NCBI RefSeq assembly: GCF_030144855.1
Contig: NC_082709.1
Coordinates: 53,258,001 to 53,322,000 of the forward strand
Direction: 5' to 3'
From: Hypanus sabinus
Lineage: Eukaryota
DNA: 64,000 bases
How positions within the stretch are numbered: the first letter of the stretch is position 1; each line of letters begins with the position of its first letter. The position numbers were made by a program, and so were the translations under genes. The notes under the pieces are model-generated. The model was not told where the DNA came from and did not search any database. It saw only the letters and a list, made by a program, of their open reading frames with translations. Below are positions 4,272 to 62,977 of this stretch, piece after piece.

Positions 4272-7200
4272 ATGAAAATTTTCCTGCTTGTCATCACTGC
4301 TGTGCAGATTCTCTACTGCTCAGGTAAGTACTGGGGAGAACGGAAAACTAGAGAACAGAATGTTGTTGGTACTGAAGTTGTTGGTTCAGTCAGCAACATT
4401 TCACCCAGGTGTGAGAAGAATTCACAGAGTTTTTTTGGGATACCTTGTATGACTTCTGCTCTCTCTCTGCAGGAATGCCAAGCACCAAGGAAGCTCTGAG
4501 AGCCTCAGTTATAAAGCTGAATGAAATCACCGAGATCACCAACCTCTGTGGTATCTCCAGGAGAGGCGTGACAAATGTAAGTGTGCCTTTGGCTAATTGT
4601 GTTTCACAAACTATGGACATGTCTGAGTGCAGGGTAATTGTTTACTTAAACCTACCTTAAGAGTAGTTTAACAGCAAAAAACAAATCAAATATGACGTTT
4701 TGTAATAGGGAGAATAAATTGTAACATTATGGGGATTTGATGAGAAGGAGAGAGGGATTGATGGGATTTTTCAGCTGGGAGCCAGTATAAACCTGAAGGG
4801 CTGAGTGGCCATGAACTGCATATATCTTATTGTGAGGTGCATTTTAAGATAAGATAGAATCTAGGCATTCAACAGGAGCTGAATTTCATATTATCTACAG
4901 AGTTCAGCAATTTAGTACTCAATCAGTGTTTGAGTTGTGGAACTTTGATTGGACCAAAGTTTCAGAATTAAGGTTGGAAGTTCTGCCAGTCTTTGATTTG
5001 CAAGTCACTGAAAATTTTCCCAAATTTGTTAGTTAATTTCCTTCAGTAATTATGGATTCATGCAAACTTAGCATCCCTAACATGATAGTTTAAGTGACAG
5101 TTTTACCATTGGGCAAAGTAATTCTCTTGTCCATTTTGGTTGATTACTCAGACACGACCAATGTAACCATCAGCTGGAAATAGAGCCTCCATAACTCTGA
5201 GTTTTCTCAGTTCAGTGGAAGAATACCAGATGCAACAATTCACCAATGATCTCATTTCCTTCCTTCAGACATACCGTACGGGTAAACTGTCCTACAGCGT
5301 GGATTTAACGTTCTCTGTGATAGAGACTGTCTGCTCCAAGAATTCTGGACAGGAATTTGATGATCCCAGTTGCTCTTTCCACCCTAAAAACATTGCGGTG
5401 AGTCCAGAGTTATATTAGATCTTGCAAGTCCGTGTATGTTCTAACATCAAAATACAGGCTTTAATTAAAGCCTATTTCATAGAAATGACTATCGGTACGT
5501 AATTATATCAAAGGAAAGGCTAAGAATTGGGTTAGTTGCTAATCATGTTGATTTATTGTCTTGTTTGGAATCATGAATAATTTCCATTCATTATGCTTCA
5601 TTCCAACAGGAGAAAGGGTTTTGCAAAAGCCATGTGGAATTTTTTGCTGATGAGGTAGCTGACGTTGATGTGGAGTGTGATGGTCTGAAGACAGTTGACA
5701 GTGAGAGTGACTCCACAGAATCCAGTGAAAACAGTATTGAGGTAACTGCATTCATACAATTCAGCGCAACTGAATTTCTAACAGAAGATCCTTTACTGAA
5801 CATTTCATTGTTTATGTATGCTGAAGATCTAAAAATAAATGTCTTTATCTTACAGGCGCAAAGCAAATCAAAAGAAACATCACTTGAGGAAACCTTAAAT
5901 GTGAGTATTAATCAGTAATTTATCAGATTTTTTTCTTGTTGATCTCAATTGTTCATGATGAAATGATTATAATTCTTAGCAATGAAATTTTACATTCTCC
6001 ATTAGGAATTGTGACAGCATGTTATGGTAGTCATGGGAGATTTTAACATGCAGGTCGATTGGGAAAATCAGGTTGGTAATGGATCTCAGGAGAGTGAGTT
6101 TGTTGAATGCCTAAAAGATAGCTTTTTAGAGCATTTTCTTGTTGAGCTTTCTAGGGGATCAGCAATACTGGATTGGGTGTTATGTAAAGAACCAGAGGCG
6201 ATTTGGGAGCTTAAAGTAGAAGAACCCTTAGGAATCGGTGATCACAATGTGATTGTGTTCAACTTGAAATTTGATCATGGGAAAGTAAAGACTGATGTAG
6301 CAGTATTTCAGTGGAGTAAGGGAAATTACAGTGGTGTGAGAGAGGAGTTGGCCAAAGTAAATTGGAAAGAGCTGCTGTCAGAGATCTCAGTAGAATTGCA
6401 GTGGTGTGCGTTTCTGGGGAAAATGAGGAAGGTGCAAGACATGTGTATTCCAAAAATGAAGAAATACTCAAAAGGTAAAATAGTACAACTGTGGCTGACA
6501 TGGGAAGTCAAAACTATTGTAAAAACAAATGAATGGGCATATAACAAAGCAAAAATTAGTCGGAAGATAGAGGATTGGGAAATTTTTAAAAATCTACAGA
6601 GAACAACTTGAAAATCATTGGAAGGGAACAGATGAAATATGAAAGCAAGCTAGCAAATAATATCAAAGTAGATAGTAAAAGATTTCTCAAGTTAAAAATA
6701 AAGGAGAAATGTGACTGGATATAGGATCACTAGAAAATGAGGCAGGAGAAATAATAACGGGGGACAAGGAGATGGCTGCTGAACTAAATGAGTATTTTGT
6801 ATCAGTCTTCATTGTGGAAAACACTAGCTGTGTGCCTGATGTTCTAGTGTGTGAAGGAAGAGAAGTGGGTGCAGTTACTATTACAAGGGAGAAGATGCTC
6901 AAAAAGTTGGAAAACCTAAAGACATATAAATAACCCGGACCAGATGAACGGCATCCTGAGGTCTGAAAGAGGTAGCGTTAGAGATTGTGGTGACATTAGA
7001 AATGATCTTTCAAAAATCATTGGACTCTGGCATGGTGCCAGTGGACTGGAAAATTTCAAATGTCCCTTCACTCTTTAAGAAAGGAGGAATGCAGCAGAAA
7101 AGAAATTATAGACCAGTTAGCCTGACCTCAGTGGTTGGGAAGATGTTAGTTAGTTGGTAAGGATGAGATGATGGAGTACTTGGTAACACAGGACAAGATA

Positions 7201-10200
7201 ATACAAAGTCAGCATGGTTTCCTTCAGGGAAAATCCTGCCTGATGAACCTGTTGGAATTTTTTGAAGAGATTACAGGTAGGATAGATAAAGGGAATTTTG
7301 TATATTTGGACTTTCAGAAGGCCTTTGACAAGGTGCCACACATGAGGCTGCTTACCAAGTTAAGAGCCCATGTTACTACAGGGAAGTTATTAACACGGTT
7401 AGAGCATTGGCTGATTAGTAGGAGGCAGCAAGTGGGAATAAAAGGATCCTTTTCTGGTTGGCTGCCAGGGGTGTTCTGCAGGGGTTGGTGTTGGGACTAG
7501 ATCTTTTTATGCTGTATATAAATGATTTAGATGATGAAATATTTGGCTTTGATGGTGAAATTGTGGAATTTATTGCCACTTGCAGCTGTGGAGGCCAGGT
7601 CGTTGGGTGTACTTAAGGCAGAAATTGATAGGTTCTTGATTGGATGTGGCATCAAAGGTTACGGGGAGAAGGCTGGGAACTGGGGTTGAGGAGATAGAAA
7701 AAAGGATCAGGCTTGATTGAATGGCAGAGCAGACTCGATAGGCTAGAAGGCCTAATCCTGTTCCTATGTCTTATGATCTTACAGTCTATGGTCTTATCCC
7801 AGTCTGATGTGTAGGGAGGGGGTCCTAATATTAGATTTCAGTGTGTGATGAGTTTGTTCTCTGCTGGAGATGAACTGAACATCAGCAGAACAGGACTACA
7901 GGAGAAGTGTCTGTCAGACTCTCATCACTGAGATTCACCAAGAACCAATCCTTCCATGGATTCAATAAAATAAACGGTAATGATGCCTGTTTCACCTATT
8001 GTCAGAATATCCATTCAATCTGCTGCTGACATTTTTTTGAATATCAGTGTAGTGTAGAGAGAATTTTTACTGAAGCTTCTACAAACTAATGCTAGTTCAT
8101 GTGATTATCATTCAGAAATGTCAGGATTAATAGCTCCATCCATAATTTGGCATTCTGGTCTATTATTTGATGATAATGCTTTAGATTTACTAAATATATC
8201 TTGCACTAATGCTATAAATGTACATTTTTATACAGGCAAAAAGCAAATCAGAAGAAACTTCACTGGAATTATTAGCAAATGTAAGTCTAATTTGGGAGTT
8301 GATATCTTCAGTTTCTCAATAAGTTGTGATACCTAGATTGATTTGTCAGAATAGAGTCTAGGGATCTTAATTCATTCTTGGCCTGTTCCAAACAGTGGGG
8401 GTGAGAAGACAGAGAGAATATTGAATATTAGTTAGTGCCCACCTCAAACCATTTTCTTATAGTAAAACTGTAAACCTTGATTCCCTTAATATCCTACAAT
8501 CCACCAATCCCTATTTTGAATGAACTTGCAACTGAGCCTCCACAGCTCTCTGGGGGTAGCAAATTCCAAAGATTCACCATCTGAGTTTCACCTCATTCCA
8601 TGTTGGCCAAGCTATTATTTTGAGACTGTAAGCCAAGCTGTCAACTCCTTAGACAGGTGAAAACCCTTCCCCTGATATCCAATCAAATCCTCTCATAATT
8701 TTGCTTATGGTTAGGCAATCATTTGTCCTATCTGTAATGAATAGTCTATCATAATTAATCTCTCCTCATGCGACAGATCCACGTTAATGGGCACTATACT
8801 AGTATAACTTTGCAATATCCTCTGTCTCAAGCATATCAGATAAGCAACCAAAATTTCACAATCCTCACAGGGCTCGATACAATTGTAGTATTCTTCTTTC
8901 CAAGTCCTCTTGCTATAAAAATAACCTGCTTTCCTAATGGCCTGCTGCATTTGCTGCTGAAATGCCCAGAGTGAACAAAGTCTCCATTATATTTCAATAT
9001 TTAATACTTGAGCAAACTGGGGATTTTTCAGTTTATATATTATCAAAGTTCTTCACTGTCCTGTAGTAAACATTAAAATATTATTTCCGTACAGGAAAAA
9101 GACAAATCAAAAGAGACATCTCTTGAAAACTCAGCTGATGTGAGTATAACTGGAAAAAAATTCAGATGAACTTTTTGATCTTGTCATTAAGTAAACACGT
9201 TAAACATATTCGATTCGACTTTGTCAGAATAGAAGGAGAGAGGGCAATTTAGACCATAAGATACAAGACAAATAAGCAGAATTAGGCCATTTTGCCCAAA
9301 AATCTGCTCCACTAACTTTAGGTCAGTGCATTGAGAAAGGGATTATGTTATTTGATTTCTGTTAGGAAGTTTGACTGAGGGGCTCCAATACAGAGAATGA
9401 GTTTGCTTCCCCTCAAGGATAAAGTGAGCTGGAAATCAACAGGATTGGGTACTAGGTGTGAGGGCAAAGTCTCTAACACTCACCAATTACAGAGTTGAAG
9501 TGATGGTGCAGAACAGCTTCAATACACCAATGCGATTAATTGTGTGAGAGTGACATTTTCCCCAATTTATATGCAGACACCCCACACCTCACTTTATTTA
9601 GGCTACATTGATCATTATATGGAATGTAATTGTTCTGGCAGGGACTTCTCCAGTGCGATAATAAATTAAAAATCGTGATATTCCTAGTTTTGTTCAAAGG
9701 TTACCCCACAAACTTTCATAACTTAACATGCTAAGCATATAAATATTGATCTTTTCATGCAGGTCAAGAGCAAGTCAAAAGAGACATCAGTCGAGGAGTC
9801 TTCTAATGTAAGTCTAATCTTGGAATTTCTATCTATTAATTTTTAAACATAATGTACAGATAAAACCTAATTTGGGCAAACATAATTAAATGACTACCTA
9901 GATCAGGAAGAGGATGGCATATTAATGCACAGATTCTCTGTGGATGCCCTGAGGATGCCCATCATTAGCCTGAGTGTGAGTTTGTTCTTCACTAAATTTT
10001 GAAATAGAATTTGAAAAGTCTATTGGGGACAATCATGGTCTGTGGATTGATATTTCTGGTAGTTTCATGAAAGGAGGATCCATTGCATTTCTCTCATTTA
10101 ACTGAGTTTAACTATGAGCTCAGGGTCTAGAAGTGTATGGCATTGATGTCAACACTGAGACCTTCGTTCATTGGGTTGAACAGGGACCAACTTGAGTCCC

Positions 10201-10607
10201 AGCTGTCTATATGTTATGCAAGGCAATACTAAATCAGGGCATATCACTTAAAAATCTTTCTTATCTATGGAACTGTCCAAATGCATTTTAAATGTCACAT
10301 TTCAACCTGTCTCTACCAATTCTATTGGCTGTTCCTTCCATAAGTTGTAAAGTTTTTGATATGGATCTATCACTGATGTGAAAATCTGATTTTATCTCAT
10401 AAAACAGATGAAAAGCAAATCAATGGAATTATCACTGGAGGAACCTTCAAACGTAAGTATAAACTGAAGCTTTGTGACTGATGTGATCATCATTAAAACT
10501 AATGACAAAATATTGATGTCAGAGTGAGCTCAGTCCAGCTGAAAATTACAAACCTGTTCATCTTTCTATTCCAGGAACAAAATGAGGACTCGAGAGCCCA
10601 GCACTGA
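4272..10607 (+). CDS. SPP2: SPP2 (secreted phosphoprotein 24)-like secreted phosphoprotein with SxE repeat tail, copy A (10 coding exons, 224 aa)
   Basis: Manually spliced, all GT-AG and in frame: 4272-4323, 4473-4576, 5269-5397, 5610-5741, 5856-5900, 8236-8280, 9095-9139, 9763-9807, 10408-10452, 10575-10607(TGA). Protein: MKIFLLVITAVQILYCSG-MPSTKEALRASVIKLNEITEITNLCGISRRGVTN-TYRTGKLSYSVDLTFSVIETVCSKNSGQEFDDPSCSFHPKNIA-EKGFCKSHVEFFADEVADVDVECDGLKTVDSESDSTESSENSIE-AQSKSKETSLEETLN-AKSKSEETSLELLAN-EKDKSKETSLENSAD-VKSKSKETSVEESSN-MKSKSMELSLEEPSN-EQNEDSRAQH. The signal peptide ends in CSG. Motifs AL.ASV.K.N, L.FS..ET.C.K.SG, C.F and C.S.V...A..V..V...C followed by a Ser-rich tract match SPP2 as I recall it. 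The symbol denotes the family, not proven orthology. Confidence 0.88.
6024..7796 (+). mobile_element. CR1-type LINE fragment (ORF2 endonuclease/RT, decayed) in intron 5 of copy A
   Basis: VMGDFN, LDWVL, GDHN, QHGF..GKSCL.NLLEFFE and YLDFQKAFDKVPH motifs; CR1-type tail (cttatg repeats); absent in copy B. Confidence 0.9.
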
Positions 10608-10820: not shown

Positions 10821-10834
10821 AATAAATTAATAAA
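10821..10834 (+). terminator. Poly(A) signal(s) of copy A
   Basis: Two AATAAA about 220 bp after the stop codon, followed by a GT/T-rich tract; position conserved in B and C. Confidence 0.7.
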
Positions 10835-10952
10835 TACAATATGGTATATTCACGGAACTGCTTCTGGAAGTTGTTTTGTTTGTCACTGACCTACAGGAGT
10901 TCATCCAGTTATTATGCTCAGGTTCACCTGTCCCTTGCCGATAGTGTATCTG

Positions 10953-11235
10953 CTTTGTCTGGTGGGACCTCCAGATGTGGGGCCACTTGCTGGTGCAGAT
11001 ACTTTGTCTGGTGAGACCTCCTGATGTGGGGCCACCTGCTGGTGCAGATGCTTTGTCTGGTGGGACCTCCTGATGTGGGGCCACCTGCTGGTGCAGATAC
11101 TTTGTCTGGTGAGACCTCCTGATGTGGGGCCACCTGCTGGTGCAGATGCTTTGTCTGGTGGGACCTCCTGATGTGGGGCCACCTGCTGGTGCAGATACTT
11201 TGTCTGGTGAGACCTCCTGATGTGGAGCCACCTGG
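10953..11235. repeat. 49-bp minisatellite, ~5.8 units
   Basis: Unit ctttgtctggtg(g/a)gacctcctgatgtggggccacctgctggtgcagat(a/g), starting at 10953, 11002, 11051, 11100, 11149, 11198. Confidence 0.95.
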
Positions 11236-13806: not shown

Positions 13807-16800
13807 GGAAAGTGGTTTGAGAAAACCAGGTCAGTACTGAGCCTCAAGAGAGAGAATATGCAGAATGTCTAAGGGATGGTGTTTTGGATTAGCTTGTTGT
13901 TGAGCACAGGAGGGGATAGGCTGTGCTGGATTGGGTGTTGTGCAATGATCTGGAGGTTGTTACATATTCAGGCAACAATAAATATATGAGTTAAGCAAGG
14001 GTTTTTATAACAAACAACACATTTATTAAACACTGAAAACAAACCCCCCCCCAAAAGTAAACAAACACTAACGTAACTGGAAATCAGCTGCTGTGCGGCA
14101 GCTTAAACAGTTCTTAAAGCGATGCAGCTCAAACAGTTCTTAAAGCGATGTTGCAAACACAGTTCTTTAAAGTAGTATTGCCAAAAGTTCTAAATGCTCA
14201 CAGTCCATTTAAAGGAGAGACTTTTTAAGACTAGTTAAATTCTCTTTCACGTCGCTTTGCTTCGATCCCCGACGTCGAACTTCCCACGAAGAATTTACGA
14301 AATTAAACGAAATGGCTTAAAGGCACTGACATTTCCTTTATCACACTGTCCTCAATCTTCTGCTATCCTGCAGAGTTTAACACGAGAACAGTCAATGAAT
14401 TCCTTCCAAATAAGGATTAAACAAGGTCGAACCCGTTTCACCATCGTAAATCGACTCTCCTCGATCATTAACTCCCGAACTCCGATCTTCACTCTCCACT
14501 GATTTCTCAACTAGCAGTATTGTAAAGAAACTGCTGGCAATGACCTTTTAAACTTCAGGCATTAGATAAAACTTCATCTTTCAACTAAACTGTGTCATCA
14601 CATTAAATCACGCAGTGGCATGAAGTCAACTTGGCAAATCCAGCCACGAACTGCCCCTCCTCACGGGGTGGGGTCTTCCTTTTATAACCTGAAAAAAAAC
14701 CTGTCACATGATCTTTACTGGCGGGAAAATGACGTCTTTCCACCATCACAAGACCATTACCTCAAGTCCAATATAGCTTCCACCCCAGTCACATGACAAG
14801 GGTACCACTGTCATGTGTCACGAGTACATAACAAGGTGGAAAGAGAGCTTAAGGTTAAGGAACCCTTAGGGAACAGTGATCATAATATGATACAGTTCAC
14901 ATTGCAATTTGAGAGGGAAAAAATAAAATCTAATGTGTCGGTGTTTCAGTGGAATACAGGAAATTACAACGGCATGAGAGGGGAACTGGCTGAAATTGAC
15001 AGGAAAGGGAAATTTGCAGGAAGGACAGCACTGCAGCAATGGCTGGAGTTTCTGCAAAAAATGAGGGAAGTGCAAGACAGATATATTCCAAATAAGAAGA
15101 AATTTTCAAAGGGAAGAAGGACATTACCATTGCTGACAAGTGAAGTCAGAGGCAAAGTAAAAGTAAAAGAGAGGACATACAAGGAAGCCAAAGCTAGTGG
15201 GAAGATAGAGGAATGGGGAGCTTTTAAAAACTTGTAGAAGGAAATTAAGAACGTCATTTAGAAGGAAAAGATGAATTATGAAAGGAGGCTGGTGACTAAT
15301 ATCAAAGAAGATACTAAAAGCTTTTTTAAGTATATAAAGGGTAAAAAAGAGTCAAAGGTAGATATAGGACCAATACAAAATGACACTGGAGATAGTGTAA
15401 TGAGAGATGGCAGAGGAAATGAATGCGTATTTTGCATCAGTCTTCACAGTGGAAGATGTCTGCAGTATATCGGACATTCAAGAGTGTCAGGGAAGTGAAG
15501 TTTATGCAGTGAAAATTGTGACCAAGAAGGTGCACAAGAAGTTTACTGGTCTGAGGGTGGATAAATCTCCTAGACCTGATGGAATACACCCTTAGGTTCT
15601 GAAGGAAGTAGCTGGAGAGATTGTGGAGGCATTAACAATGATCTTTCAAGAATTGATAGATTCTGGCATTGTACTGGATGACTGGAAAATTGCAAATGTT
15701 ACTCCACTTTTTAAGAAGGGTGGGAGGCAGCAGAAAGGAAACAATAGACCTGTTAGCCTGAAATAAGTGGTTGGGAAGTTGCTGGAATCAATTGTTAGAG
15801 ATGATATTATGGAGAACCTGGAGGCACATGACAAGATAGGGCCAAAGCCAGCATGGTTTCCTGAAAGGAAAATTCTGCCTGACAAACCTACTGCAATTCT
15901 TTGAGGAAATTATAAGCAGAGTAGACAAAAGAGATGCAGCAGACGTGGTGTACTTGGATTTTCAGAAGGTCGTTGACCAGATGCCACACATGAGGCTGCT
16001 TAGCAAGGTAAGAACCTATGGAATTACAGGGAAGTTACTAGAGTGGGTGGAGCATTGGCTGGTCGGCAGAAAACATTGATTGGGAATAAAGGGATCCTAT
16101 TCTGGCTGGCTGCTGGTTACCAGTGGAGTTCCACAGGGGTCGTTGTTGGGACCACTGCTTTTTACGATGTATGTCAATGATTTGGGCCAAGGTATTGATG
16201 GATTTGTGGCTAAATATGTTGATGATACAAAGATAGGTGGAGGAGTGGGTAGTGTTGAGGAAACAGAGAGCCTGCAGAGAGACTAAGATAGTTTAGGGGA
16301 ATGGGCAAAGAAATTGCAAATGAAATACAATGTTGGAAAGCGTATGGTCATGCACTTTGATGGAAGAAATAAATGGGCAGACTGTTATTTAGATGGGGAA
16401 AGAATTCAAAATGCAGAGATCCAAGGAGACTTGGGAGTCCTTGTGCAAGATACACTAAAGGTTAACCTCCAGGTTGAGTCAGTTGTGAAGAAGGGGAATG
16501 CAATGTTGGCTTTCATTTCTAGAGGTATAGAATATAAGAGCAGGAATGTGATGTTGAGGCTCTATGAGGCACTCGTGAGACCACACGGAGTATTGTGTGC
16601 AGTTTTGGGCTCCTTATTTTAGAAAGAATATACTGACATTAGAGAAGGTTCAGAGAAGATTCACGACAATGATTCCAGGAATAAAAAGTTTATCATATAA
16701 GGAATGTCTGTCAGCTCTTGGACTGTATTCTCTGGAGTTCAGGAGAATGAGGAGTGATGTCATAGAAACATTCCGAATGTTAAAAGGCCTGAACAGATTA

Positions 16801-17146
16801 GACACGGCAAATTTATTTCCCATGGTAGGGGATTCTAGGACAAGAGGGCACAACTTCAGGATTGAAGGATGTCCTTTTAGAACTGATATGCAGAGAAATT
16901 ACTTTAGTCAGAGTTTGATAAATCTGTGGAATTTGTTGCTACAAGCGGCTGTGGAGATCAAGTCCTTGGTTGTATTTAAGGCAGAGATAGATAGGTTCTT
17001 AAATAGCCAGGGCACTAAAGGGTATGGGGTGAAAGCAGGGGAGTGGGGATGACTAGAAGAATTGGATCAGCACATGATTGAATGGCAGAGCAGACTCGAT
17101 GGACCAAAGGGCCTACTTCTGCTCCTATACCTTATGGTCCTATGGC
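13807..17146 (+). mobile_element. CR1 LINE (5'-truncated, decayed ORF2) interrupted by a solo LTR
   Basis: LGNSDHN, SGVPQGSLLGP, YVDDTKIGG and QRRFTTMIPG motifs; CR1 tail; interrupts sequence that is contiguous in unit D. Confidence 0.9.
13958..14833 (-). mobile_element. Solo LTR nested in CR1
   Basis: TGTTA...TAACA termini and 4-bp TSD AGGT; CR1 sequence resumes on both sides; TATAAAA and AATAAA on the minus strand. Confidence 0.8.
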
Positions 17147-17321
17147 ATTATTATTGACTGAAACGTTGTTTCAATGAGCAACATGAAGATGAAACACCAG
17201 CTACAACTAATGAATCTTGGCATGAAAAGGGTTAACTTAAATGTACTGCCCTGTAAAAACTGGGGATAAATAGACTCCTTACAAGATAACTCAATTCAGA
17301 TTTTCCTACTTTAAAAACATT

Positions 17322-18565
17322 AACCCTAACCCACCTGGACAAAAAAGACACATACGTTCGAATGCTGTTCATAGACTTCAGTTCAGCATTCAACACAATC
17401 ATTCCTCAGAAACTGATTGGAAAGCTGAGCCTACTGGGCCTGAACACCTCCCTATGCAACCGGATCCTAGACTTCCTGACTGGGAGACCTCAGTCAGTCT
17501 GGATCAGAGGCAGCATCTCCAACATCATCACATGGGGGCCCCCCAGGGCTGTGTGCTCAGTCCACTGCTGTTCACTCTGCTGACCCACGACTGTGCTGCA
17601 ACACACAGCTGGAACCACATCATCAAGTTTGTCGATGACATGACCGTGGTGGGTCTCATCAGCAAGAACGACGAGTCAGCTTACAGAGAGGAGGTGCAGC
17701 AGCTAACGGACTGGTGCAAAGCCAACAACCTGTCTCTGAATGTGAACAAAACAAAAGAGATGGTTGTTGACTTCAGGAGGGCACGGAGCGACCACTCCCC
17801 GCTGAACATCGACGGCTCCTCGGTAGAGATCGTTAAGAGCACTGAATTACTTGGTGTTCACCTGACAGAAAATGTCACCTGGTCCCTCAACACCAGCTCC
17901 ATAGCAAAGAAAGCCTGGCAGCATCTCTACTTTCTGCGAAGGCTGACGAAAGTCCATCTCCCACCCCCCATCCTCATCTCATTCTACAGAGGTTGTATTG
18001 AGAGCATCCTGAGCAGCTGCAACACTGCCTGGTTAGGAAATTACACCATCTCGGATCGCAAGACCCTGCAGCAGATAGTGAGGTCAGCTGAGAAAATCGT
18101 CAGGATCTCTCTTCCCGCCATTACAGACATTTACACTACACGCTACATCTGCAAAGCAAACAGCATTAGGAAGGACCCCACACACCCCTCATACAAACTC
18201 TTCTCCCTCCTGCCATCTGGGAAGAGGCATCAGAGCATTCCGGCTCTCATGACCAGTTTCTTCCCCCAAGCTATCAGACTCCTCAATACCCAGAGAATGG
18301 ACTGACACCAACTTATTCCCCTCCACTGTGCCTATTGTCTTGTCTATTATTTATTGTAATGCCTGCACTGTTTTGTGCACCTTATGCAGTCCTGGCTAGG
18401 TCTGTAGTCTAGTGTAGTTTCTTTTTCTCTGTTGTTTTCATGTAGTTCAGTGCAGTTTTTGTACTGTTTCATGTAACACCATGGTCCCGAGAAACGTTGT
18501 CTCATTTTCACTGTGTACTGCACCAGCAGTTATGGTTGAAGTGACAATAAAAAGTGTCTTTACTT
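17322..18565 (+). mobile_element. Rex1/Babar-type LINE (RT 3' half)
   Basis: [66 protein letters not shown]. Confidence 0.9.
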
Positions 18566-21659: not shown

Positions 21660-24600
21660 ATGAAAACTTTCCTGCTTGCCATTGCTGCTGTGCAGATCCT
21701 CTACTGCTCAGGTAAGTACTGGGGAGAACGGAAACCCAAAGAGCAGGAAGTTGTTGGTACTGAACATCAAGCAGTGACATTTCACCGAGGTGTGAGAAGA
21801 ATTCACAGAGGTTTTTTGGAATGCATATTGTATGACTTCCCCTCTCTCTCTGCAGGAATGCCAAGCACCAAAGAAGCTCTGAGAGCCTCGGTTATAAAGC
21901 TGAATGAAATCACCGAGATCACCAACCTCTGTGGTATCTCCAGGGGAGGTGTGACAAATGTAAGTGTGCCTTTGGCTAATTGTGTTTCACAAACTATGGA
22001 CATGTCTGAGTGCAGGGTAACTGTCCACTTAAGCCTGCCCTAAGAGTAGACTAACAACAAAAAAAAAATCAAAGGATAGATGATGTTTTATAATAGGGAG
22101 AATAAGTTGTAACATTATGGGGATTTGATGAGAGAGAGAGTGGGATTGATGGGATTGGTCTGCTGGGAGCCCATATTACCTGAAGGGCTGATTAGCCTCA
22201 AACTGCATAATTCAAACTATGAGATAAATTTTAAGATAAGATGGAATCTAAGTATTCAACGGGAGCTGAATATTATATTGTGTATAGAATGGTCAGCTTT
22301 TTAATTCTCTATCAGTGTTTGAGTTGTGCAACTTTGATTGGACCAAAGCTTTGGAATTAAGTTTGGAAGTTCAACCAATCTTTGATTTGGAAGTCACTAA
22401 AAGTTTTTCCAAATACGTTAGTTAATTTCCTCCAATAGTTATGGATTCATGCAAACTGAGTATCCCTATCGTGATGGTTTAAGTGACAATTTTACCATTG
22501 GGCAAAGTAATTCTCTTGTCCATTTTGGTTGATTGTTGTTGTAACCACTGTTAAAGTCTCTGTAACTCTGAGTTTTATCAGGCCAGTGGAAAAACACCAA
22601 AGGTAATAATTCACCAATTATCCTTCTCCCTTTCTTAAGACATATCGTACAGGTAAACTATCCTACAGTGTGGATTTAACATTCTCTGTGAAAGAAACTG
22701 ACTGCTCCAAGAATTCTGGACAAGAATTTGATGATCCCAGTTGTTCTTTCCGCCCTAAAAACATTGCGGTGAGTCCAGAGTTATATTAAATCTTGCAAGT
22801 CCGTGTATGTTTTAACATCAAAATACAGGCTTTAATTACAGCCTGTTTGATAGAAATGGCCATACATATCCAGTCATTTGAAAGTAAAGGCTAAGAATTG
22901 AGTTAGATCATAATCATGTTGACTTCATGTCGTGCTTGGAATCATGAATAATTTCCTTACATTGTGCTTCATTCTAACAGGGGAAAGGGTTTTGCAAAAG
23001 CCATGTGGAATTTTTTGCTGATAAGGTAGCTGACGTTGATGTGGAGTGTGACGGTCTGAAGACAGTTGACAGTGAGAGTGACTCAACAGAATCGAGTGAA
23101 AACAGTATTGAGGTAACAACATTCATACAATTCAGGACAAAGGAATTTCTAACACAAGATCCTTTACTGAACATTTCATTGCTTATTTATGCTGAAGATC
23201 TAAAAATAAGAATCTTTATCTTACAGGCACAAAGGCAATCAAAAGAAAAATCACTTGAGGAAATCTCAGATGTGAGTATTAATCAGTAATTTATCAGATT
23301 TTTTTCTTGCTGATCTCAATTGTTCATGATGGGGTGATTATAATTGTTTGCAATGAAATGTTAAGTTCTCCATTAGGAATAGTGGATGAGACAGCATGTA
23401 ATCCCAGTCTGATGTGTAGGGACGGGATCCTAATGTTAGATTTCAGTGTGTGATGAGTTGCTTCTCTGCTGGAGATGAACTGAGCATCAGCAGAACAGGA
23501 CTACAGGAGAAGTGTCTGTCAGACTCTCATCACTGAGATTCACCAAGTACCAATCCTTCCATGGATTCAATAAAACAGATGGCAATGATGCCTATAGCAA
23601 CTGTGGCAGGAATATCCATTCACTCTGCTCCTTACAGTTTTTTGAATATCAGTGTAGTATAGAGAGATTTTTTTTGAAGCTTCTGCAATCTAACACTAAT
23701 TCGTAGGATTATCATTCAGAAATGTTAGGATTAATAACTGTCCATTGATAATTCAACATTCTGGTCTATTATTTGGTAATAATGTTTTAGATTTACTAAA
23801 TATACCTTGTACTAATGATATAATTGTACATGTTTTTATATAGGTGAGAAGCAGATCAGAAGAAACTTCACCAGAAATATCTTCAAATGTAAGTTTAATT
23901 TAGGATTTGATATCCAGTTTCTCAATAAGATATGAAACCTAGGTCGATCTGTCAGAATAGAGTCTGAGGATCTTACGTCATTCTTGACTGTTCTAGATGG
24001 TGGGTGTGACAGACAGTGAGAACATTGAATATTAGCTTCTACCTCAAAGCATTTTCCTGTCATAACACTGTAAGCTTTGATTCCCTTAAAATCAAACAAT
24101 TCTTCCAATCCCTGTTTTGAATGAACTTGCAATTGAGACTCCCCAGCTCTCCGGGGTAGCGAATTCCAAAGATTCACCATTTGAGTTTCACCTCATTCCT
24201 CATTGACCAAACTCTTATTTTGACACTATGAGCCAGGGTCTCAACTCCACAGATTAGTGAAAACCCTTTCCCTGATAAGCAATCAAGCCCTCTCACAATT
24301 TTGTTCACCTCTCATTCTTTCAATCCGTAATGAGTAGAGTCTATCGCACTTAATCTCTCCTCATGTGGCAGATGTATTTTCATGGGTAGTATACTTGTAT
24401 AACTTTGTTCTATCCTCTGTCTCAAGCATATCCTTCTTCAGATAAGCAGACCAAAACCACACGGTCCTCACCAGGGCTCAATACAATTACAGTATTCTTT
24501 TTTTCAAGTCCTCTTGCAATAAAGATAATTTGCCTTCCCAATGGCCAGCTGTAGTTGCTGCTGTAATGCCCAGAATGAACAAAGACTCCGTTATATTTCA

Positions 24601-27228
24601 ATATTTAATACGTGCAAACTGGGAATTTTTCAGTTTATATGTTTTCAAAATTCCTCACTGCCCTGTACTAAATATATAAATATTATATCCATACAGGAAG
24701 AAGACAAATCAAAAGAGACATCTCTTGAGGAGTCAGTTGATGTGAGTATAAATGGAAAAAAAGGTGATCTTTTGGATCTTGACGCTAAGTAAATATGTTA
24801 AACATATTGGATTCAGCTATGTCAGAGTAGAGGGAGAAAGGGCCATTTAGACCATAAAATATAAGATATAGGAGCAGAATAAGGCCATTTGGTCATCTAG
24901 TCTGCACCACTTTCTTTAGGTCAGTCTATTGAGATAGGTATTGTGATGTTTGATTCCTGTGGGGAAGTTTGACTGAGGCGCTCCAATACAGAAGATGAGT
25001 TTGCCCTCAAGGATGCCCAAGTTTGCCCTTGAGTTTATCCTCAAGGATAAATTATTGACAAGATTGGGTGCTGGATACGAGGGCAAAGTCTGTAACAATC
25101 ACCAATTACAGAGACCAAGTGATGGTGAAGATCAGCTTCAACACACCAATACCAATTAATTGGGTGAGAGTGACAATTTCCCCAAATTATCTACAGACCC
25201 CTCACACTTCACATTATCCAGGTGATATGATTATTTTTGCAGAATGTAGTTGTTCTGATGAGCACTTGTCCACTGCAGTAATAGATTTTAAAAGGGGATA
25301 AAAACTAGGTTTATAAATAATTGAATCTTTAAAGGGTTTGTTCTCAGGTTATTTCATAAACTTTCATAAATTAACATGCTAAGCATATAAATATTGATCT
25401 TTTCATGCAGGTCAAGAGCAAGTCAAAAGAGACATCAGTCGAGGAGTCTTCTGATGTAAGTCTAATCTTGGAATTGTTATCTATTGATTTTCACCCATAA
25501 TATACTGACAAAACCTAATTTGGGCAAACATAATTAAATGACTACCTAGATCAGGGAGAGCATGGCATATTAATTCACAGATTCTCTGTGGATGCCCTGT
25601 GGATGCCCATCATTAGCCTGAGTGTGAGTTTGTTCTTCACTAAATTTTGAAATAGACTTTGAAAGGACACTCTCTCCTGGGGACAATCATGGTCTGTGGA
25701 TTGATATTTCTGGTAGTTTCATGAAAGGAGGATCCTCTCATTTAAATCACTATAACTATTGGCTCTGAGTCTACAAGTGTATGGTGCAGGGAGATGTCAG
25801 CACTGAGACTTTCCACTGGTCAGGTCAACGTAGAATTTGTGTCCCAGCTGTCTACGTGGCACACAAGCCGGTACATAAGCCAAGGTAGTATGATATGGAG
25901 AGCAAGCTGTTGTCTATGTAGCAGGTTCACCCTCTCTATGTAGCTGATGAATCCAAAGGATGGCAGAGACTGATACAGCTTGGCACCAGTGGTGTTACGG
26001 GAGTTGCCAGTCAGCTTTGAACTCAACATAAGACTGCAGATCCAGAGTTTTCCTTGTGGGTTATTCCGAAAGCCATTCCCATGGGTGGCTGTAGACGCAA
26101 TGCAGTGGAGGTTTGAGATCAGAATATTCATTCTCCAAGATGAACTGCTAACCACAGCTGATGAGCCCCATGTGCCTGAAGCAACTAGTTTTAAAGTTCC
26201 AGTAAACCATCTTTGCCCCTCCATCTTTCAGTAGCAACCGTTCCATTGACTTAGTAACTAACGTACATGTGAAGGCCTGGAGCTTGGTTTGATTGTCAGA
26301 GGCTATTTGAAATGTATGCTACTGGGAGCATTTAATAGGTAGTGGGAGCTTATCCCCACTACAACAGTGCCTATAACAACCTCAAGCAATCAAAGTCAGC
26401 ACAGTGGAGAACAAATGAAGGAATCAATCACCCCTCCTAGATTAATAGAATCATCGAGTAATACAATGCAGGAGCTAGTCCTTTGTCCAATTCATCTGTG
26501 CTGAACAAGTTTTCTACATTTGGCCTATATCTCTTAAATATCTTTCGTTATCAATGGACTGTCCAAATGCATTTTATATGTCACATTTCTACTGGTCATT
26601 CATGTCATAAAACCACCATCTTTATTTGAAAAAATTGCCCCTCACCTCACTTTTGAATCTTCCCCGTTGCACTTTAAATCTATGTTCTCTCACTTTAGAC
26701 TCCTTTACCCTGAGGAAATTACTTTGGCTATTCACCTTATCTATTCCTCTCCAAATTTTATTAACCTGTACAGTATTACATCTTCACCTACTTTCTTGCA
26801 CTTCAGAGAATCAACTCCTCACCTATCCAGCCTTTCCTTACGCAACAAACCCTCCAGCCTTGGTAATATCTTCACAATTCTTGTTTGCGTCTTCTTCAAG
26901 AAAGTGACATTCTTTGTAATTGAGTCCACTATGTTAATACTTTGCTGAAATTCAGATTAATTGTGAAGTGAAGTTTTTGATCTGGATCTATCACTGATTT
27001 GCAAATCTGATTTTATCTTGTAAAACAGATGAAAAGCAAGTCAACAGAATTATCATTGGAGGAGCCTTCAAACGTAAGTATAAACTGAAGCTTTGTGTCT
27101 GATATGATCATCCTTAAAACTAATGACCAGACTTTGACATCAGAGTGAGCTCAGTCCAGCTGAAATTTACAAATCTGTTCACCTTTCCATTCCAGGAACA
27201 AAATGAGGACTCGCGATCCCGTCACTAA
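21660..27228 (+). CDS. SPP2: SPP2-like SxE-repeat secreted phosphoprotein, copy B (10 coding exons, 224 aa)
   Basis: Exons 21660-21711, 21856-21959, 22640-22768 (AAG acceptor), 22981-23112, 23227-23271 (AQRQSKEKSLEEISD), 23844-23888 (VRSRSEETSPEISSN), 24697-24741 (EEDKSKETSLEESVD), 25411-25455 (VKSKSKETSVEESSD), 27029-27073 (MKSKSTELSLEEPSN), 27196-27228 (EQNEDSRSRH*). Open frame; same exon sizes and phases as copy A. Confidence 0.88.
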
Positions 27229-27576: not shown

Positions 27577-27801
27577 CTTTGTCTGGTGGGACATCCTGAT
27601 GTGGGGCCACCTGCTGGTGCAGATACTTTGTCTGGTGAGACCTCCTGATGTGGGGCCACCTGCTGGTGCAGATGCTTTGTCTGGTGGGACATCCTGATGT
27701 GGGGCCACCTGCTGGTGCAGATACTTTGTCTGGTGAGACCTCCTGATGTGGGGCCACCTGCTGGTGCAGATACTTTGTCTGGTGGGACCTCCAGATGTGG
27801 G
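27577..27801. repeat. 49-bp minisatellite, ~4.6 units (paralogous to 10953-11235)
   Basis: Same unit at the same position downstream of the copy B poly(A) signal. Confidence 0.95.
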
Positions 27802-40565: not shown

Positions 40566-43500
40566 ATGAAAACTTGCCTGCTCGCCATCATTGCCGTACA
40601 GATCCTCTACTGCTCAGGCAAGTACTGGGGAGAGAGGGACCCCAGAGAGCAATAACTTTTTGGTGCTGAGCTTCAGTCAGTGATGTTTCACCCATGTGTA
40701 AGAAAAATTCGCTGAAGTTGGTTGGAATGTATTTTAGAACTTTTTCTCTTTCTCTCTCTGCAGGAATGCCAAGCACTAAGGAAGCTCTGAGAGCCTCGGT
40801 TATAAAGCTGAATGAAATCACTGAGATCACCAACCTCTGTGGTATCACTAGGAGAGGAGTGACAAATGTAAGTGGGTCCTTGGAGAATTGTGTTTCACGG
40901 TCCATGGATGCATCAGAGTATAGATTAATAGGCTACTAAAAGTTAGCCTGAGAGTAGGTTAACAGCAAAAAAAAAATCAAAGGGGAGATGCTGATGTGGT
41001 TGAGACAATAACTTACAGTATTATGGGTATTTGAGGAAAGGGGAATAGGATTGATGGATTGTTTCGCTGAGAGCTAGTGTAGGCTTGAAGGGCTGAGTGG
41101 CCTCAAACTGTACAATTTTAAGTATAAGGTATATTTAGGATATGATGGTGACCAAGTACTAAACTGGAGCTGAATATTACATTATATGCAGAACTTACAC
41201 TGAATATCAGATCAGGATCATAAATTCTCTATCAGTATTTGAGTTGTGAATCTCTGATTGGACCAATGTTTTGGAATTAAGATTGGATGTTCTACCATTT
41301 GTTCATCTGGAAGCCCCTGAAAGGTTTTCAAATTTTGTTTGTCATTTTCCACCAATAATTAGGAGTTCCTGCAAACTGATATTCCTATCCTGATGGTTTA
41401 AGTTGTCATTTTACTATCGGGCAATTTAAATCTCTTGTCTATTTTGGCTGATGATTCAGATGCTGTCAGTGTAACTATCTGGTGGGAAAAAAGCCCTGTG
41501 TAGCTCTGCTCTTTGTCAGACCAGTGGAAGAACACCAGAGATAACAAAGCACTAATAAACTCTTCTCCTTCCTTCAGACATATCGCACAGGTAAACTTTC
41601 CTACAGTGTGGATTTAACGTTCTCTGTGAAAGAAACTGTCTGCTCCAAGAATTCTGGACAGGAATTTGATGATCCCAGCTGCTCCTTCCGCCCTAAAAGC
41701 ATTGCGGTGAGTCCAGAGTTATATCTTAGATTATACGTCCGTGTGTGTATTAGCATTAAAACACGAGCTTTAATTACAACCTATTTCATAGAAATGAGCA
41801 TAGATATGGACAGAAAGGCTAAGAATTGGGTTAGATCATAATCACTTTGATTTACATTCTTGCTTGGAGTCATCAATAATTTCCTTGCACTATGCTTCAT
41901 CCCAACAGGAGAAAGGGTTTTGCAAAAGCCATGTGGAATTTTTTGCTGATAAGGTAGCTGACGTTGATGTGGAGTGTGACAGTCTGAAGACAGTTGACAG
42001 CGAGAGTGACTCGACAGAATCGAGTGAAACCAGTATTGAGGTACAGAATCTGCAATCTGGTCAATGGGATTTCTAACACAAGATATTCACTAAACATTAG
42101 AATATATTAGTGTGGTATGCTGAAGATCTAAATATAAATATCTTTATCTTACAGGCCCAAACCAAATCAAAAGAGACATCACTAGAGGAAACCTCAAATG
42201 TGAGTATTACTTAATAATTCATCAGATGTTTTTTCATGCTGATCTCAATTGTTAGTAACGGAGTGATTATAATTGCTAGCAATGAAATGTTAAGCTCTTC
42301 ATTAGAAATAGTGGGTGAGATGGCATATTATCCTAGTCTGGTGTGCAGGGAGGGGATTCTAACATTCTAACAGTGCATGCTGAGTTTAGTCTCCAGTAAA
42401 GATGAACTGACCACCAGCAGAACAGGACTGAAAGAGGAGTGTCTATAAAACCCACACCAATGGGAGTAACATTTTATTGATTCCTGGAGGGGAATCATAG
42501 ATTCAGTAAAAAAGATGATAATCGGAGCTGTGCCACCTATTGTAGGAATATCCATTGACCCTACACCAGACATTTAGCCAGGCACTTTTCTGAACATTGG
42601 TGTACGGTAGAGACTGGGGATTTTATTGAGGCTTGTGCAATTTTATGATCGGTCATAGGATCTTCATTCGGCAATGTCAGGATTGACAATCCTTTATTTA
42701 GCATTAAGTATGCAAGTCTGCTCTTTGGAGGAAAACTATTAATGTTTTCTATTTATTGGAGGTCACCTATTAATGCTTTCTGTCCTATTGTGTTAATATT
42801 AGAATGTTGATGTTTTTTATGTAGGTTGAAAATAAGTCAGAAGAAACTTCAGTGGAAGAAGAATCTCTAAACGTAAGTTTAATTTGGAAAATATTACCTT
42901 CAGATTCTCAGTAAGATGTGAAACCTTGACTGATCTGTCAGAATACCGAGGATATTGCTTCATAGTAGGCTTGTTCCAGACTGTGGTTGAGAGAGAGAGA
43001 AGACGGAGAAAATATTGAATATTAACTTCTACCTCAAACCATTTTCCTATGGTAACACTGCAATTCTTGATTTCCTTAATATCCATCAATCCACCAATTA
43101 CTGTTCAGAATTAACTCAGTGAATGAGCCTTCACAACTCTCTGGGGTAGCAAGTTCCAAAGATTCACCATCTTGGTGAAGAGATTACATCTCACCTCATT
43201 TCTAATTGGTCACTCCCTTATTCTGCGACTGCAACCCAAGCTCTCAACTCCTTAGATAGGCAAAATATCCCACCTTTCTAACCAGTCAAGACCTCTCATA
43301 ATTTTGTTCACTGTAAGGCAATTACCTCTCATTCTTTCAAGCTGTGAATAATAAATGTGCCATATGCACCATCCCAGACTCTACCCAGGTGGAACTATGC
43401 TTCATCCTTCTTCACAAGCATATCATTTTTCAGATCAACCGACCAAAACTACACAATCCTCACCAGAGCTTGATACAACTGTCGTACTCTTTTTCTTAAG

Positions 43501-45708
43501 CCTTCTTGCAATAAAGGCAATTTGCCTTCCCAATGGCCTGCTGCATTTGCTGCTGAAAAGCCCAGAAATAACATAGACTCTGTTATATTTCAATATTTAA
43601 TACTTGTGCAAGCCGGGAATTTTTCAGTTTATGTGTTTTCAAAATTTCTCACTGCCCTGTACTAAACATATAAATATTATTTCCACACAGAAAAAAGACA
43701 AATCAAAAGAGACATCTCTTGAAGATTCAGCTGATGTGAGTATAGGTGGAAAAAAATGCTGATGAAATATTTGATCCTGGTTGCAAGTTAAAATGTTTAA
43801 CATCTCGGACTTGACCATGTTAGAAGAGAGGAAAAGAGAACCATTTATTTTGATCAGTGCATCGAGAAAGACATTCTGTGATTTGATTCCTGTGGGGAAA
43901 TCGGGCTGAGAGGCAAATTGAGACTCCAATACAGAGAATGAGTTTGTTCCCTCAAGGATAAAGTGACCTAGATATTAACCAGATTGTGTGTTAGACATGA
44001 GGGCAGCGTCTGTAACATTCACCAATTATAGACCAAATGTTGGTGGGATTGACACTGTTTCCTGAATTATCTTCTGACCCCACCTCCGCCCAAACCTCAC
44101 AATATCCAAACTACATTGATCGCTGTTGCAGATATTAATTGCTTTGGTGAGCAATTATCCACTGCTGTACTGAATCTCAAAGCCTGATATATTTATGGTC
44201 ATTTCTAATTCAATCATTAAAGATTTGTTCAAAGATTACTCCACAAATCTTTATTAATATACGTGCTAAGCATATAAATATCGATTTTTTTTTCATGCAG
44301 GTAGACAGCAAGTCAAAAGAGACATCAGTCGAGGAGTCTTCAATTGTAAGTCTAATCTTGGAATTTTTATCTATTGATTTTCAACCATAATATAGTGATG
44401 AAACCTAATTTGAATAAACTTTATTAATGACTATCTAAAGCAGGGGTTCCCAACCTGAGGCCCACGGTCTCCTTGCATTATAGTACTGGTCCTTGGCATA
44501 AAAAAGGTAGGGAACCCTGGATCTAGAGATCGATAGAGGTGCATATAAATGCACAAATTCGATAAGATATTCTCCATTCAATTCCTGATGATGCCCAACT
44601 TCAGCCTGAATATGAGTTTGATCTTCACTTAATATTGAAATAGAATTAGGAAGGGCAATCATGGTCTGTGGAAAGATATACTGTAACTGTGGCTTCATGA
44701 AAGGAGCATCTCTTAAATTTCCTCATTTAATTGTATATAATTACTGGCACAGAGGCTAGAAGTGTATGGTGCTGAGATATGTCAGCCCAGTCAAGACCAA
44801 TTGGTAAAAGAATCATCTCTCCGAGCTTCATAGGGTCACAGGGTTATACAATGCAGTAACAGATCACTTGATTCAATTCATCAGTGCTGACCAAGTTGCC
44901 TAAGTCAGCTCATCCCATTTCTCTGCATTTGGCCTATATCCCTTGAAACTTTTCCCATCTACTAAGCTGTCCAAATGCATTATAAATGCCACCATTGTAT
45001 CTTCCTCTACCAATTCCTCTAGCAGATCATTCCATAAATCCACCACCACTGTGAAAAAATATTCCCCTCTGATCACTTTTAAATCTCTCCTTTCTGATGT
45101 TAAACTTGCGGTGTCCAATTTTAGAGTGTCCTACCCTCTGGAAAATACTTTGGCTCTCTGTTTTATAATTTTATAAACCTAAATTACATCTTTATCCATC
45201 TTCCTATGGTCAACGAAAACATCTCCAGGTCTATCCATCTCCTTATAACCAAAGCCCTCCAGACTTAGTAGCAGATCCATATATCTTTTGTGCTCCCTCT
45301 CCAATATAATGCCATCCTTTGTAACATTCAATCTTAGAGTCCCATTGCCTTTAGAGTTTGCTGAAATTAAAATTGATAGTGGTGTTTGCTGTGGATTTCT
45401 CACTAACCTAACAGTTCTGAAATTAAAGTGATTTCACACACCCAATTACAAACTGAACCTCATTTGACTTTGTATCCAGAAATGATTTCTAATACTTCAA
45501 AATTTTAACTTATAAAACAGATGAAAAGCAAATCAACAGAATTATCATTGGAGGAGCCTTCAAAGGTAAGTATAAACTGCGACTTTGTGTCTGATATGAT
45601 CATTATTAAAACTAATGAGAAAACATTGACGTCAGAGTGAGCTCAGTCCAGCTGAAAATTACAAATCTGTTCATCTTTCCATTCCAGGAACAAAACGAGG
45701 ACTCGTGA
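40566..45708 (+). CDS. SPP2: SPP2-like SxE-repeat secreted phosphoprotein, copy C (10 coding exons, 221 aa)
   Basis: Exons 40566-40617 (GC donor, CAG|GCAAGT), 40764-40867, 41578-41706, 41909-42040, 42155-42199 (AQTKSKETSLEETSN), 42825-42872 (48 nt, VENKSEETSVEEESLN), 43691-43735 (KKDKSKETSLEDSAD), 44301-44345 (VDSKSKETSVEESSI), 45521-45565 (MKSKSTELSLEEPSK), 45688-45708 (EQNEDS*). Confidence 0.85.
44441..44520. mobile_element. 80-bp hAT MITE in intron 8 of copy C
   Basis: TIRs caggggttcccaacct / aggtagggaaccctg; 8-bp TSD atctaaag / atctagag; absent from A and B. Confidence 0.8.
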
Positions 45709-56772: not shown

Positions 56773-56993
56773 NNNNNNNNNNNNNNNNNNNNNNNNNNNN
56801 NNNNNNNNNNNNNNNNNNNNNNNNNNNNNNNNNNNNNNNNNNNNNNNNNNNNNNNNNNNNNNNNNNNNNNNNNNNNNNNNNNNNNNNNNNNNNNNNNNNN
56901 NNNNNNNNNNNNNNNNNNNNNNNNNNNNNNNNNNNNNNNNNNNNNNNNNNNNNNNNNNNNNNNNNNNNNNNNNNNNNNNNNNNNNNNNNNNNN
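56773..56993. other. Assembly gap (N run)
   Basis: Run of N. Confidence 1.
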
Positions 56994-61435: not shown

Positions 61436-61513
61436 AGGCAGTGAGGTGAGGGCAGAGAGGAAAGTAACTCCTTCTCTCTGAGAAACCAGGCGGTCCATCC
61501 CACTTGAGGCAGA

Positions 61514-62977
61514 ATGAAATCCTTCCTGCTCACTCTCGCTGCCATGCAGATCCTGCACTGCTCAGGTAAGTACTGGGGAGATAGAGACCTCAGAAAGCAG
61601 TAAGTTGTTGGTTCGGTGCCTTAGTCAATGATATTTCATCCATGCGTAAGCGGAATTCAATTAGGTTCATTGGAATCTGTTCTACAACCTTCCCTCTCCC
61701 TCTGCAGGAGTGCCACGCACCAAGGAAGCTCTGAGAGCCTCAGTAATAAAGCTGAATGAAATCACCGAGATCCCCAACCTCTGTGGTATCTCCAGGAGAG
61801 GCGTGACAAATGTAAGTGTGTCCTTGGCTAATCGTAGTTCACAAAATATGGATGCGTCTGGGTGCAGGTTAATTTGCTACTAAAACTTACCCTAAGGGTA
61901 GGTTAGCAAGAACAAAAATCAAATGGGAGATGATGCTATGTGATAGGGAGAAAAACTTGCAGAAGATGATATTATATAAAGAGTTTTCCATGTATATCAG
62001 ATCAGTACTTCGAATTCTCAATCAATATTTCAGTTGTGGAACTCTGATTGCGCCAAAGTTTTATAATTAAGTTTGGAAATTCTTCCAGTCTTTGATTTGG
62101 AAATCACTGAAAGTTTTCACAAATATTGTTTGCTAATTTCCTCCCATAATTAAGGGTTCCTGCAAACTGAGTATCCTTATCATGACAGTTTAAGTGGCAA
62201 TTTTCCATTGAACAAATTAATTATCTTGTCTATTTTGACTAATCTAGTGTACCATCATCTGTAAATAAAACCCTGTGTAGCTCTGCTCTTTGTCAGACCA
62301 GTGGAAGAGCAGTAGAGATAACAATGCACTAATAACCTCCTTTCCTCTCTTCAGACATATTGCACAGGTAACCTGTCATACGGCGTGGATTTAACATTCT
62401 CTGTGAAAGAAACTGTCTGCTCCAAGAATTCTGGACAGGAATTTGATGATCCCAGCTGCTCCTTCCACTCTAAAAACATTGCGGTGAGTCCAGAGTTATA
62501 TTAGATCTTGCAAGTGCTTGTATGTTTTAGGATTAAAACACAAACTATAATTACAACCCTTTTCATAGAAATGACCATACATATATGTAGCTATATCTAA
62601 TTAAAGGCTAAGAATTGTGTTAGATCATAATCACATAGATTTTGTGTGTTGCTTGGTATCATGAATAATTTCCATTCATTATGCTTCATTCTAACAGGAG
62701 AAAGGGTTTTGCAAAAGCCATGTGGAATTTTTTGCTGATAAGGTAGCTGACGTTGATGTGGAGTGTGGTGGTCTGAAGACAGTTGACAGTGAGAGTGATT
62801 TGACAGAATCGAGTGAAAACAGTATTGAGGTAACTGCATTCATACAATTCAGCGCAATCGAATTTCTAACAGAAGATCCTTTACTGAACATTTCATTGTT
62901 TATGTATGCTGACGAATATCTTTATCTTACAGGCGCAAAGCAAATCAAATGAAACATCACTTGAGGAAACCTCAAAT
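61514..62977 (+). CDS. SPP2: SPP2-like SxE-repeat secreted phosphoprotein, copy D (partial, exons 1-5; continues past window end)
   Basis: Exons 61514-61565 (MKSFLLTLAAMQILHCSG), 61708-61811, 62355-62483, 62698-62829, 62933-62977 (AQSKSNETSLEETSN). Canonical splice sites, no stops. Intron 5 homologous sequence runs to 64000. Confidence 0.85.

Follow-up and report, generated by a model that had tools for sequence, protein, structure and literature searches.

In bony vertebrates spp2 is a single-copy gene, whereas in cartilaginous fishes it is tandemly duplicated and its copies fall into four clades, spp2.1, spp2.2, spp2.3 and spp2.Like (Debiais-Thibaud et al., BMC Biol, April 2026; PMC13188829). 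The hallmark of the spp2.3 clade is a tandem cluster at the sh3bp4/arl4c/nme9/vps8 locus, with seven copies in the catshark, at least 15 in the thorny skate and one in the elephant shark, and the chondrichthyan proteins keep the cystatin-like domain and have gained many SxE motifs, which are putative Fam20C sites (PMC13188829). Here we analyze a window of 64,000 nucleotides of chromosome 4 of the Atlantic stingray, Hypanus sabinus (NC_082709.1, positions 53,258,001 to 53,322,000), numbered below from its first letter. The window contains four + strand genes (A-D) assigned to the spp2.3 subfamily, which are neighbouring paralogues in the spp2 cluster. These genes are Spp2-derived, tandemly amplified and of secreted type, and they are already known: RefSeq names all four loci "secreted phosphoprotein 24-like", and Table S14 of PMC13188829 lists 16 H. 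sabinus chromosome 4 loci, among them LOC132392263, LOC132392264, LOC132392115 and LOC132392116 consecutively, with their sequences included in its alignments. They show no essential difference from other chondrichthyan spp2.3 genes, such as catshark spp2.3s1-7; however, that study does not describe exons, and the tail built of 45-nt mini-exons is presented here. A first-pass annotation of the raw sequence had proposed a new, lineage-specific expansion. Both parts of that proposal fail, since the loci had been published and since chondrichthyans in general share both the tandem expansion and the SxE tail, a generality that the annotation itself had named as an argument against novelty.

By self-comparison, the + strand of the window carries four direct repeats whose starts lie about 17.4, 18.9 and 20.8 kb apart. 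Each unit of about 17-21 kb opens with a small-exon gene, and all coding exons are 132 nt or shorter, which explains why the list of open reading frames misses these genes, as the first-pass annotation had stated. Its count of at least four head-to-tail genes also agrees with our models: genes A-C are complete, with 10 exons each of 21-132 nt, and gene D leaves the window after exon 5. The model of gene A, whose exons measure 33-132 nt, was built by hand, and each of its introns has a GT donor and an AG acceptor. The exons homologous to those of gene A are all intact in B and C, and exons 1-5 are intact in D. The gene models are as follows.

4272..10607, + strand: gene A, LOC132392263 (XP_059822077.1), 224 aa, 14 SxE
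4272-4323, 4473-4576, 5269-5397, 5610-5741, 5856-5900, + strand: gene A coding exons 1-5
8236-8280, 9095-9139, 9763-9807, 10408-10452, 10575-10607, + strand: gene A coding exons 6-10, the last with the stop codon
5856..10452, + strand: gene A mini-exon span, five 45-nt phase-0 mini-exons
~10825-10840, + strand: gene A poly(A) signals
21660..27228, + strand: gene B, LOC132392264 (XP_059822078.1), 224 aa, 15 SxE
21660-21711, 21856-21959, 22640-22768, 22981-23112, 23227-23271, + strand: gene B coding exons 1-5
23844-23888, 24697-24741, 25411-25455, 27029-27073, 27196-27228, + strand: gene B coding exons 6-10
40566..45708, + strand: gene C, LOC132392115 (XP_059821946.1), 221 aa, 14 SxE
40566-40617, 40764-40867, 41578-41706, 41909-42040, 42155-42199, + strand: gene C coding exons 1-5, the first with a GC donor
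42825-42872, 43691-43735, 44301-44345, 45521-45565, 45688-45708, + strand: gene C coding exons 6-10, exon 6 of 48 nt and exon 10 with an earlier stop
61514..62977, + strand: 5' part of gene D, LOC132392116 (XP_059821947.1), the remainder lying outside the window
61514-61565, 61708-61811, 62355-62483, 62698-62829, 62933-62977, + strand: gene D exons 1-5
4130..4271, + strand: conserved upstream region with a TATAAA box (GGATATAAAGAC), common to all four copies

Exon 10 is followed by a 3' untranslated region (UTR) of about 250 nt, conserved across A, B and C, with AATAAA signals at its end. Intron 1 of gene C is of the GC-AG type (40617-40619), and the other three copies show GT at this position. 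Between the TATAAA box and the ATG, gene A has a (GA)31 microsatellite (4165-4225), which is probably located in the 5'UTR; GA units are few in B and C and almost lacking in D. Furthermore, three RefSeq proteins of Mobula and Leucoraja (P0003, P0004 and P0005) show N-terminal extensions (MSQC.NVV...) that resemble the translated promoter/TATA-box region, and their start codons are probably mis-called.

The spliced models were compared, by local BLASTP, with the family proteins found in the database. Model B is 100% identical to XP_059822078.1 (P0033) over 224 aa, and the partial model D to XP_059821947.1 (P0053) over 154 aa. Model A differs from XP_059822077.1 (P0038, 209 aa) only in a 15-aa block, placed by the alignment at exon 9, which is absent from RefSeq, and model C is identical to XP_059821946.1 (P0047, 206 aa) except for mini-exon 7, likewise absent from RefSeq. 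The genomic AG/GT splice sites of both omitted mini-exons (10408-10452 in gene A and 43691-43735 in gene C) are intact, and the omissions may reflect cassette exons or incomplete models. In the RefSeq product of gene D, two mini-exons are followed by an unrelated 41-aa C-terminus and the protein has only seven SxE; this gene may be a degenerating copy or may be mis-modeled.

Pfam analysis of the RefSeq proteins of A-D shows the Spp-24 family (PF07448) with 36.6-39.6 bits (cutoff 26), and exon 3 by itself reaches 23-26 bits on this model. Cathelicidin (14.8-17.9 bits, cutoff 21) and Cystatin (13.3 bits, cutoff 22.2) remain below their cutoffs, in agreement with the first-pass view that the genes derive from Spp2 and not from cathelicidins, and a grouping with cathelicidins or fetuins was rejected on these scores. 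No casein or SCPP model matched the window proteins in the Pfam scan. Four cysteines (C74, C87, C100 and C118) are invariant across 43 family members, as is C43, and the last conserved cysteine is followed by a Ser-rich tract (DSESDSTESSE). The structure of protein B predicted by AlphaFold from 43 homologues shows an N-terminal hydrophobic helix (residues 3-15), which fits a putative signal peptide of secreted type, a single helix packed on a β-sheet in residues ~20-122, with predicted local distance difference test (pLDDT) values >90, and disorder in residues 125-224 (pLDDT ~32-45, that is, <50). The protein is thus predicted to combine an Spp-24 domain of cystatin-like fold, carrying two disulphide pairs, with a disordered acidic tail. 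The putative signal peptide, SPP2-type cystatin domain and Ser/Glu/Lys-rich tail which had been read from the raw sequence are confirmed, the tail measuring 103-106 aa.

A search of PDB by sequence returned nothing meaningful. By structure, the top Foldseek matches in PDB were the cathelin-like domain 4eyc (template modelling score of 0.76, by target), cystatins F, E/M and D, and fetuin-B. This likeness of fold to the cathelin-like domain and the cystatins, together with the weak sub-threshold Cathelicidin matches, could favour an effector of cystatin or cathelicidin type, that is, a protease inhibitor or the precursor of an antimicrobial peptide, acting for example in mucus or in the spine gland. 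We consider this function hardly credible, as Spp-24 is the sole Pfam family over its cutoff, the C-terminus is acidic and rich in Ser and Glu instead of being a cationic peptide, and every relative found by sequence is SPP24-like. These relatives were collected with an exon-3 profile search of a representative library, which gave 11 strong relatives. One of these served in turn as a full-length query and retrieved over 120 skate, ray and shark proteins named "secreted phosphoprotein 24-like". Neither of these word-indexed searches returned bony-fish SPP2, spp2.1 or spp2.Like proteins.

The window genes and bony-vertebrate SPP2/Spp24 belong to the same Pfam family and occupy homologous loci (PMC13188829), and both encode a cystatin-like domain with two disulphides and, after it, a phosphoserine tract; however, the bony-vertebrate gene is single-copy and liver-expressed, and its protein has a short Ser tract and an Arg-rich, non-repetitive C-terminus, whereas the window genes encode about 100 aa of SxE modules. 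This tail, which starts after the last conserved cysteine and measures 103-106 aa, contains about 25% Ser, 20-22% Glu and 9-13% Lys, with hardly any Arg. It has 14 S-x-E sites in A, exactly as counted in the first-pass annotation, 15 in B and 14 in C. Five 45-nt phase-0 mini-exons encode most of it, with the consensus xKSKSKETSLEExSN and two SxE each, and the flanks of their splice sites are also alike, which points to internal exon duplication. No further mini-exons were found in a search 3' of gene A exon 9. The same mini-exon layout is present in a thorny skate locus (L002).

Protein lengths across the family peak at 194, 209 and 224 aa, and where RefSeq gives several isoforms for one gene, as in Hemitrygon and catshark, these differ by precisely one block of 15 aa and are otherwise free of mismatches. 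These 15-aa steps point to the skipping of cassette mini-exons as the likely source of the isoforms, and such skipping may also account for the single mini-exon that RefSeq leaves out of A and out of C.

Numbers of SxE sites, counted across the family after the last conserved cysteine, are as follows.

Egg-laying skates: 15-17 SxE sites
Catshark spp2.3: 9-11 SxE sites
Mobula: up to 17 SxE sites
Hemitrygon: up to 16 SxE sites
Elephant shark: 22 SxE sites

The elephant-shark protein (XP_007905871.1, P0010) belongs to the same family and has the most SxE sites in this count, its number being given as 21 or 13 in PMC13188829. Its gene differs from the window genes in that the tail, which has Arg-rich stretches, is encoded by a single exon of about 465 nt (Callorhinchus milii, L001 7201-7665), where 15/45-nt in-exon tandem repeats encode ESREx units, while the window genes use separate mini-exons. 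Comparison of both arrangements suggests that the multiplication of SxE arose twice by different routes, through mini-exons in batoids and through a repeat-bearing exon in the elephant shark. A second SPP24-like protein of C. milii (XP_007905874.1, P0153, 194 aa) has matches at L001 that are restricted to short segments of the first exons. PMC13188829 reports a single copy in this species, and P0153 may represent either an earlier model or an additional gene.

A quick maximum-likelihood tree was generated with 93 family proteins and the window models and rooted at its midpoint. Since the family searches had returned no bony-fish SPP2, spp2.1 or spp2.Like proteins, the tree is one without an outgroup and without rows for these groups. 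Genes A-D are included in a clade which contains only Myliobatiformes (Hypanus, Hemitrygon and Mobula; SH-aLRT 96), nested in a batoid clade (99). The batoid clade sits with catshark spp2.3s3-7, in a group that holds catshark spp2.3s1 and s3-7. A single-copy clade (100) includes one H. sabinus protein (P0148) and catshark spp2.2 (P0149, XP_038646305.1), and the window genes are outside it. On this grouping, A-D appear to belong to the spp2.3 clade. Genes B, A and D show identities of 96%, 93% and 92%, respectively, to Hemitrygon akajei proteins, compared with about 82-88% to their own neighbours; therefore, these duplications predate the split between Hypanus and Hemitrygon.

Between copies, dS (synonymous divergence) is 0.17-0.28, and the ratio of nonsynonymous to synonymous divergence (dN/dS) ranges between 0.12-0.35 in exons 1-4 and 0.26-0.55 in the mini-exons. 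Exons are more conserved than introns, which together with the dN/dS values marks A-D as constrained genes and not chance open reading frames, and the values indicate purifying selection that is looser on the tail. Transcription was analyzed with contigs of four H. sabinus RNA runs, which carry no tissue label, aligned to gene B at 88% likeness. The ends of contig pieces coincide with borders of exons 2 and 4, spliced joints connect exons 8 and 9 (25451 to 27029) and exons 9 and 10 (27071 to 27194), and one contig joins exon 4 to exon 9 via 132 unaligned letters, about the length of three mini-exons of a paralogue. In addition, one 87-nt piece is a perfect match to the gene B 3'UTR. Spliced family transcripts are present in runs X7, X8 and X10, and the family is thus transcribed and spliced in H. 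sabinus. Other sequencing runs of unlabelled kind contain about 25-29% of the words from an intron-rich query and from a 3'UTR query alike, so that they are probably DNA.

Regarding function, expression of catshark spp2.2 and spp2.3 is recorded in mineralising chondrocytes and in adult cartilage, with cartilage levels of hundreds to thousands of transcripts per million (TPM), and thornback-ray spp2.3 is expressed in Meckel's cartilage (PMC13188829). We consider it probable that A-D are spp2.3 paralogues whose secreted products, with a cystatin domain and an SxE tail, regulate mineral deposition in tessellated cartilage. By homology with the catshark and thornback-ray spp2.2/2.3, the proteins would be made by chondrocytes of the mineralising (tessellated) cartilage. 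The Golgi kinase Fam20C would phosphorylate the S-x-E serines of the tail, and the resulting polyanionic tail would bind calcium phosphate, by which the proteins could promote or restrain the growth of the mineral. Tandem copies may raise dosage, and cassette mini-exons may tune tail length.

Several points weigh against this assignment to cartilage mineralisation. No chondrichthyan spp2 protein is known to be phosphorylated or to bind calcium phosphate. Stingray cartilage expression is extrapolated from other species, the RNA runs being of unlabelled tissue; most RNA pieces are about 93% identical to gene B and therefore come from other paralogues, while words of the gene A 3'UTR are absent from all indexed RNA runs. 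Regarding the clade, the tree is a quick search made with neither spp2.1 nor bony-fish outgroups, and the elephant-shark rows, which have long branches, adjoin spp2.2 in it, whereas in PMC13188829 they are inside spp2.3.

Mammalian Spp2 has, together with fetuin-A, an established role as a plasma mineral chaperone (PMC13188829), and the window proteins retain both the domain and the Ser-rich tract. By this analogy, they could be released from liver or another organ into plasma and form calciprotein particles that keep calcium phosphate soluble. In the catshark, however, all spp2 paralogues show a TPM of 0-2.3 in liver or blood, compared with the hundreds to thousands reached by spp2.2/2.3 in cartilage (PMC13188829), and a circulating role is improbable.

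The first-pass annotation had suspected a histotroph-feeding ray, which is correct for H. sabinus, and had on that condition named uterine milk as an attractive site of expression. Some copies would be expressed in the trophonemata and would carry calcium phosphate to the embryos as mineral, in the manner of caseins. The matrotrophy of this ray is consistent with such a role, the tail is casein-like in composition and in S-x-E density, and the pregnant uterus is outside the sampling of PMC13188829. Nothing relevant on Spp2 in stingray histotroph or trophonemata proteomes or transcriptomes was found in the literature. Nevertheless, egg-laying skates have 15-17 SxE and the catshark 9-11, with equal or higher copy numbers, and the mini-exon layout also occurs in the thorny skate. 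Furthermore, at least three of the four window genes are nearer to Hemitrygon relatives than to paralogues of their own genome, which argues against a species-specific burst, and the recorded expression of the clade is in cartilage (PMC13188829). As the tails of egg-laying skates and catshark are the same or richer and their copies no fewer, the uterine-milk idea is left without support and we regard it as very unlikely. It is also very doubtful indeed that one or more spp2.3 paralogues, beside a cartilage role, were co-opted in stingray trophonemata as a calcium-phosphate carrier of milk.

The comparison with caseins is better placed at the level of mechanism. SCPPs, which include caseins and SPP1-like acidic phosphoproteins, derive from SPARCL1. 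Like the window proteins, they are secreted and disordered, have clusters of Fam20C S-x-E sites encoded in short phase-0 exons that are duplicated or skipped, and are arranged in tandem arrays; however, they have no cystatin domain and are of separate ancestry, whereas the window proteins carry the Spp-24 domain. Membership of the SCPP/casein family was rejected, given this domain and the fact that all sequence relatives are SPP24-like. The S-x-E sites in short phase-0 exons support the view that these proteins may work like SCPPs without belonging to them. The convergence with caseins and other SCPPs proposed in the first-pass annotation is reasonable in this sense; it is not a new idea, as the conclusions of PMC13188829 had already drawn it, describing the spp2 case as "quite comparable" to SCPP evolution, milk included.

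Besides the spp2 units, the window contains only transposon pieces, and it has two runs of N.

2073-2247: N run, intergenic
56773-56993: N run (assembly gap), intergenic, between genes C and D and in no gene model

The second gap is located about 10.8 kb 3' of the gene C poly(A) signals and 4.5 kb 5' of the gene D ATG. No reading frame crosses it, so that only the spacing between C and D is uncertain. Searches with exon-plus-flank nucleotide sequences and tblastn with protein A found no Spp2-like exons between 45.8 and 61.5 kb or near either gap, nor was a degenerate fifth copy found in the C-D interval or around the gaps. Both N runs sit at about the same place in the repeat unit, right after a block homologous to 514-1718, and the sequence at this shared position is probably hard to assemble. 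A 49-bp minisatellite with 94% matches is located directly 3' of the poly(A) signals of genes A (10953-11234, 5.8 copies) and B (27577-27801, 4.6 copies). Two fragments of long interspersed nuclear elements were also found: one within intron 5 of gene A (6024-6611), with an endonuclease/reverse transcriptase-like reading frame, and one intergenic (16597-18305), with a reverse transcriptase reading frame and an ALKBH8_N-like match. The intronic repeats of gene B (24784-24982 and 25779-26375) are covered by many RNA contigs at high depth, which points to expressed transposons.

The reading of the gene family and its architecture from raw sequence was accurate. To the published account of these loci, this analysis adds the modular 45-nt mini-exon tail of batoids, the 15-aa isoform steps in stingray and catshark, the contrasting exon of the elephant shark, and the omission, in the RefSeq models of A and C, of a mini-exon with intact splice sites. 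To our knowledge, cartilaginous fishes are without the classical bone SCPP repertoire, and this family represents a second, independent vertebrate lineage of tandem acidic phosphoproteins tied to skeletal mineralisation.

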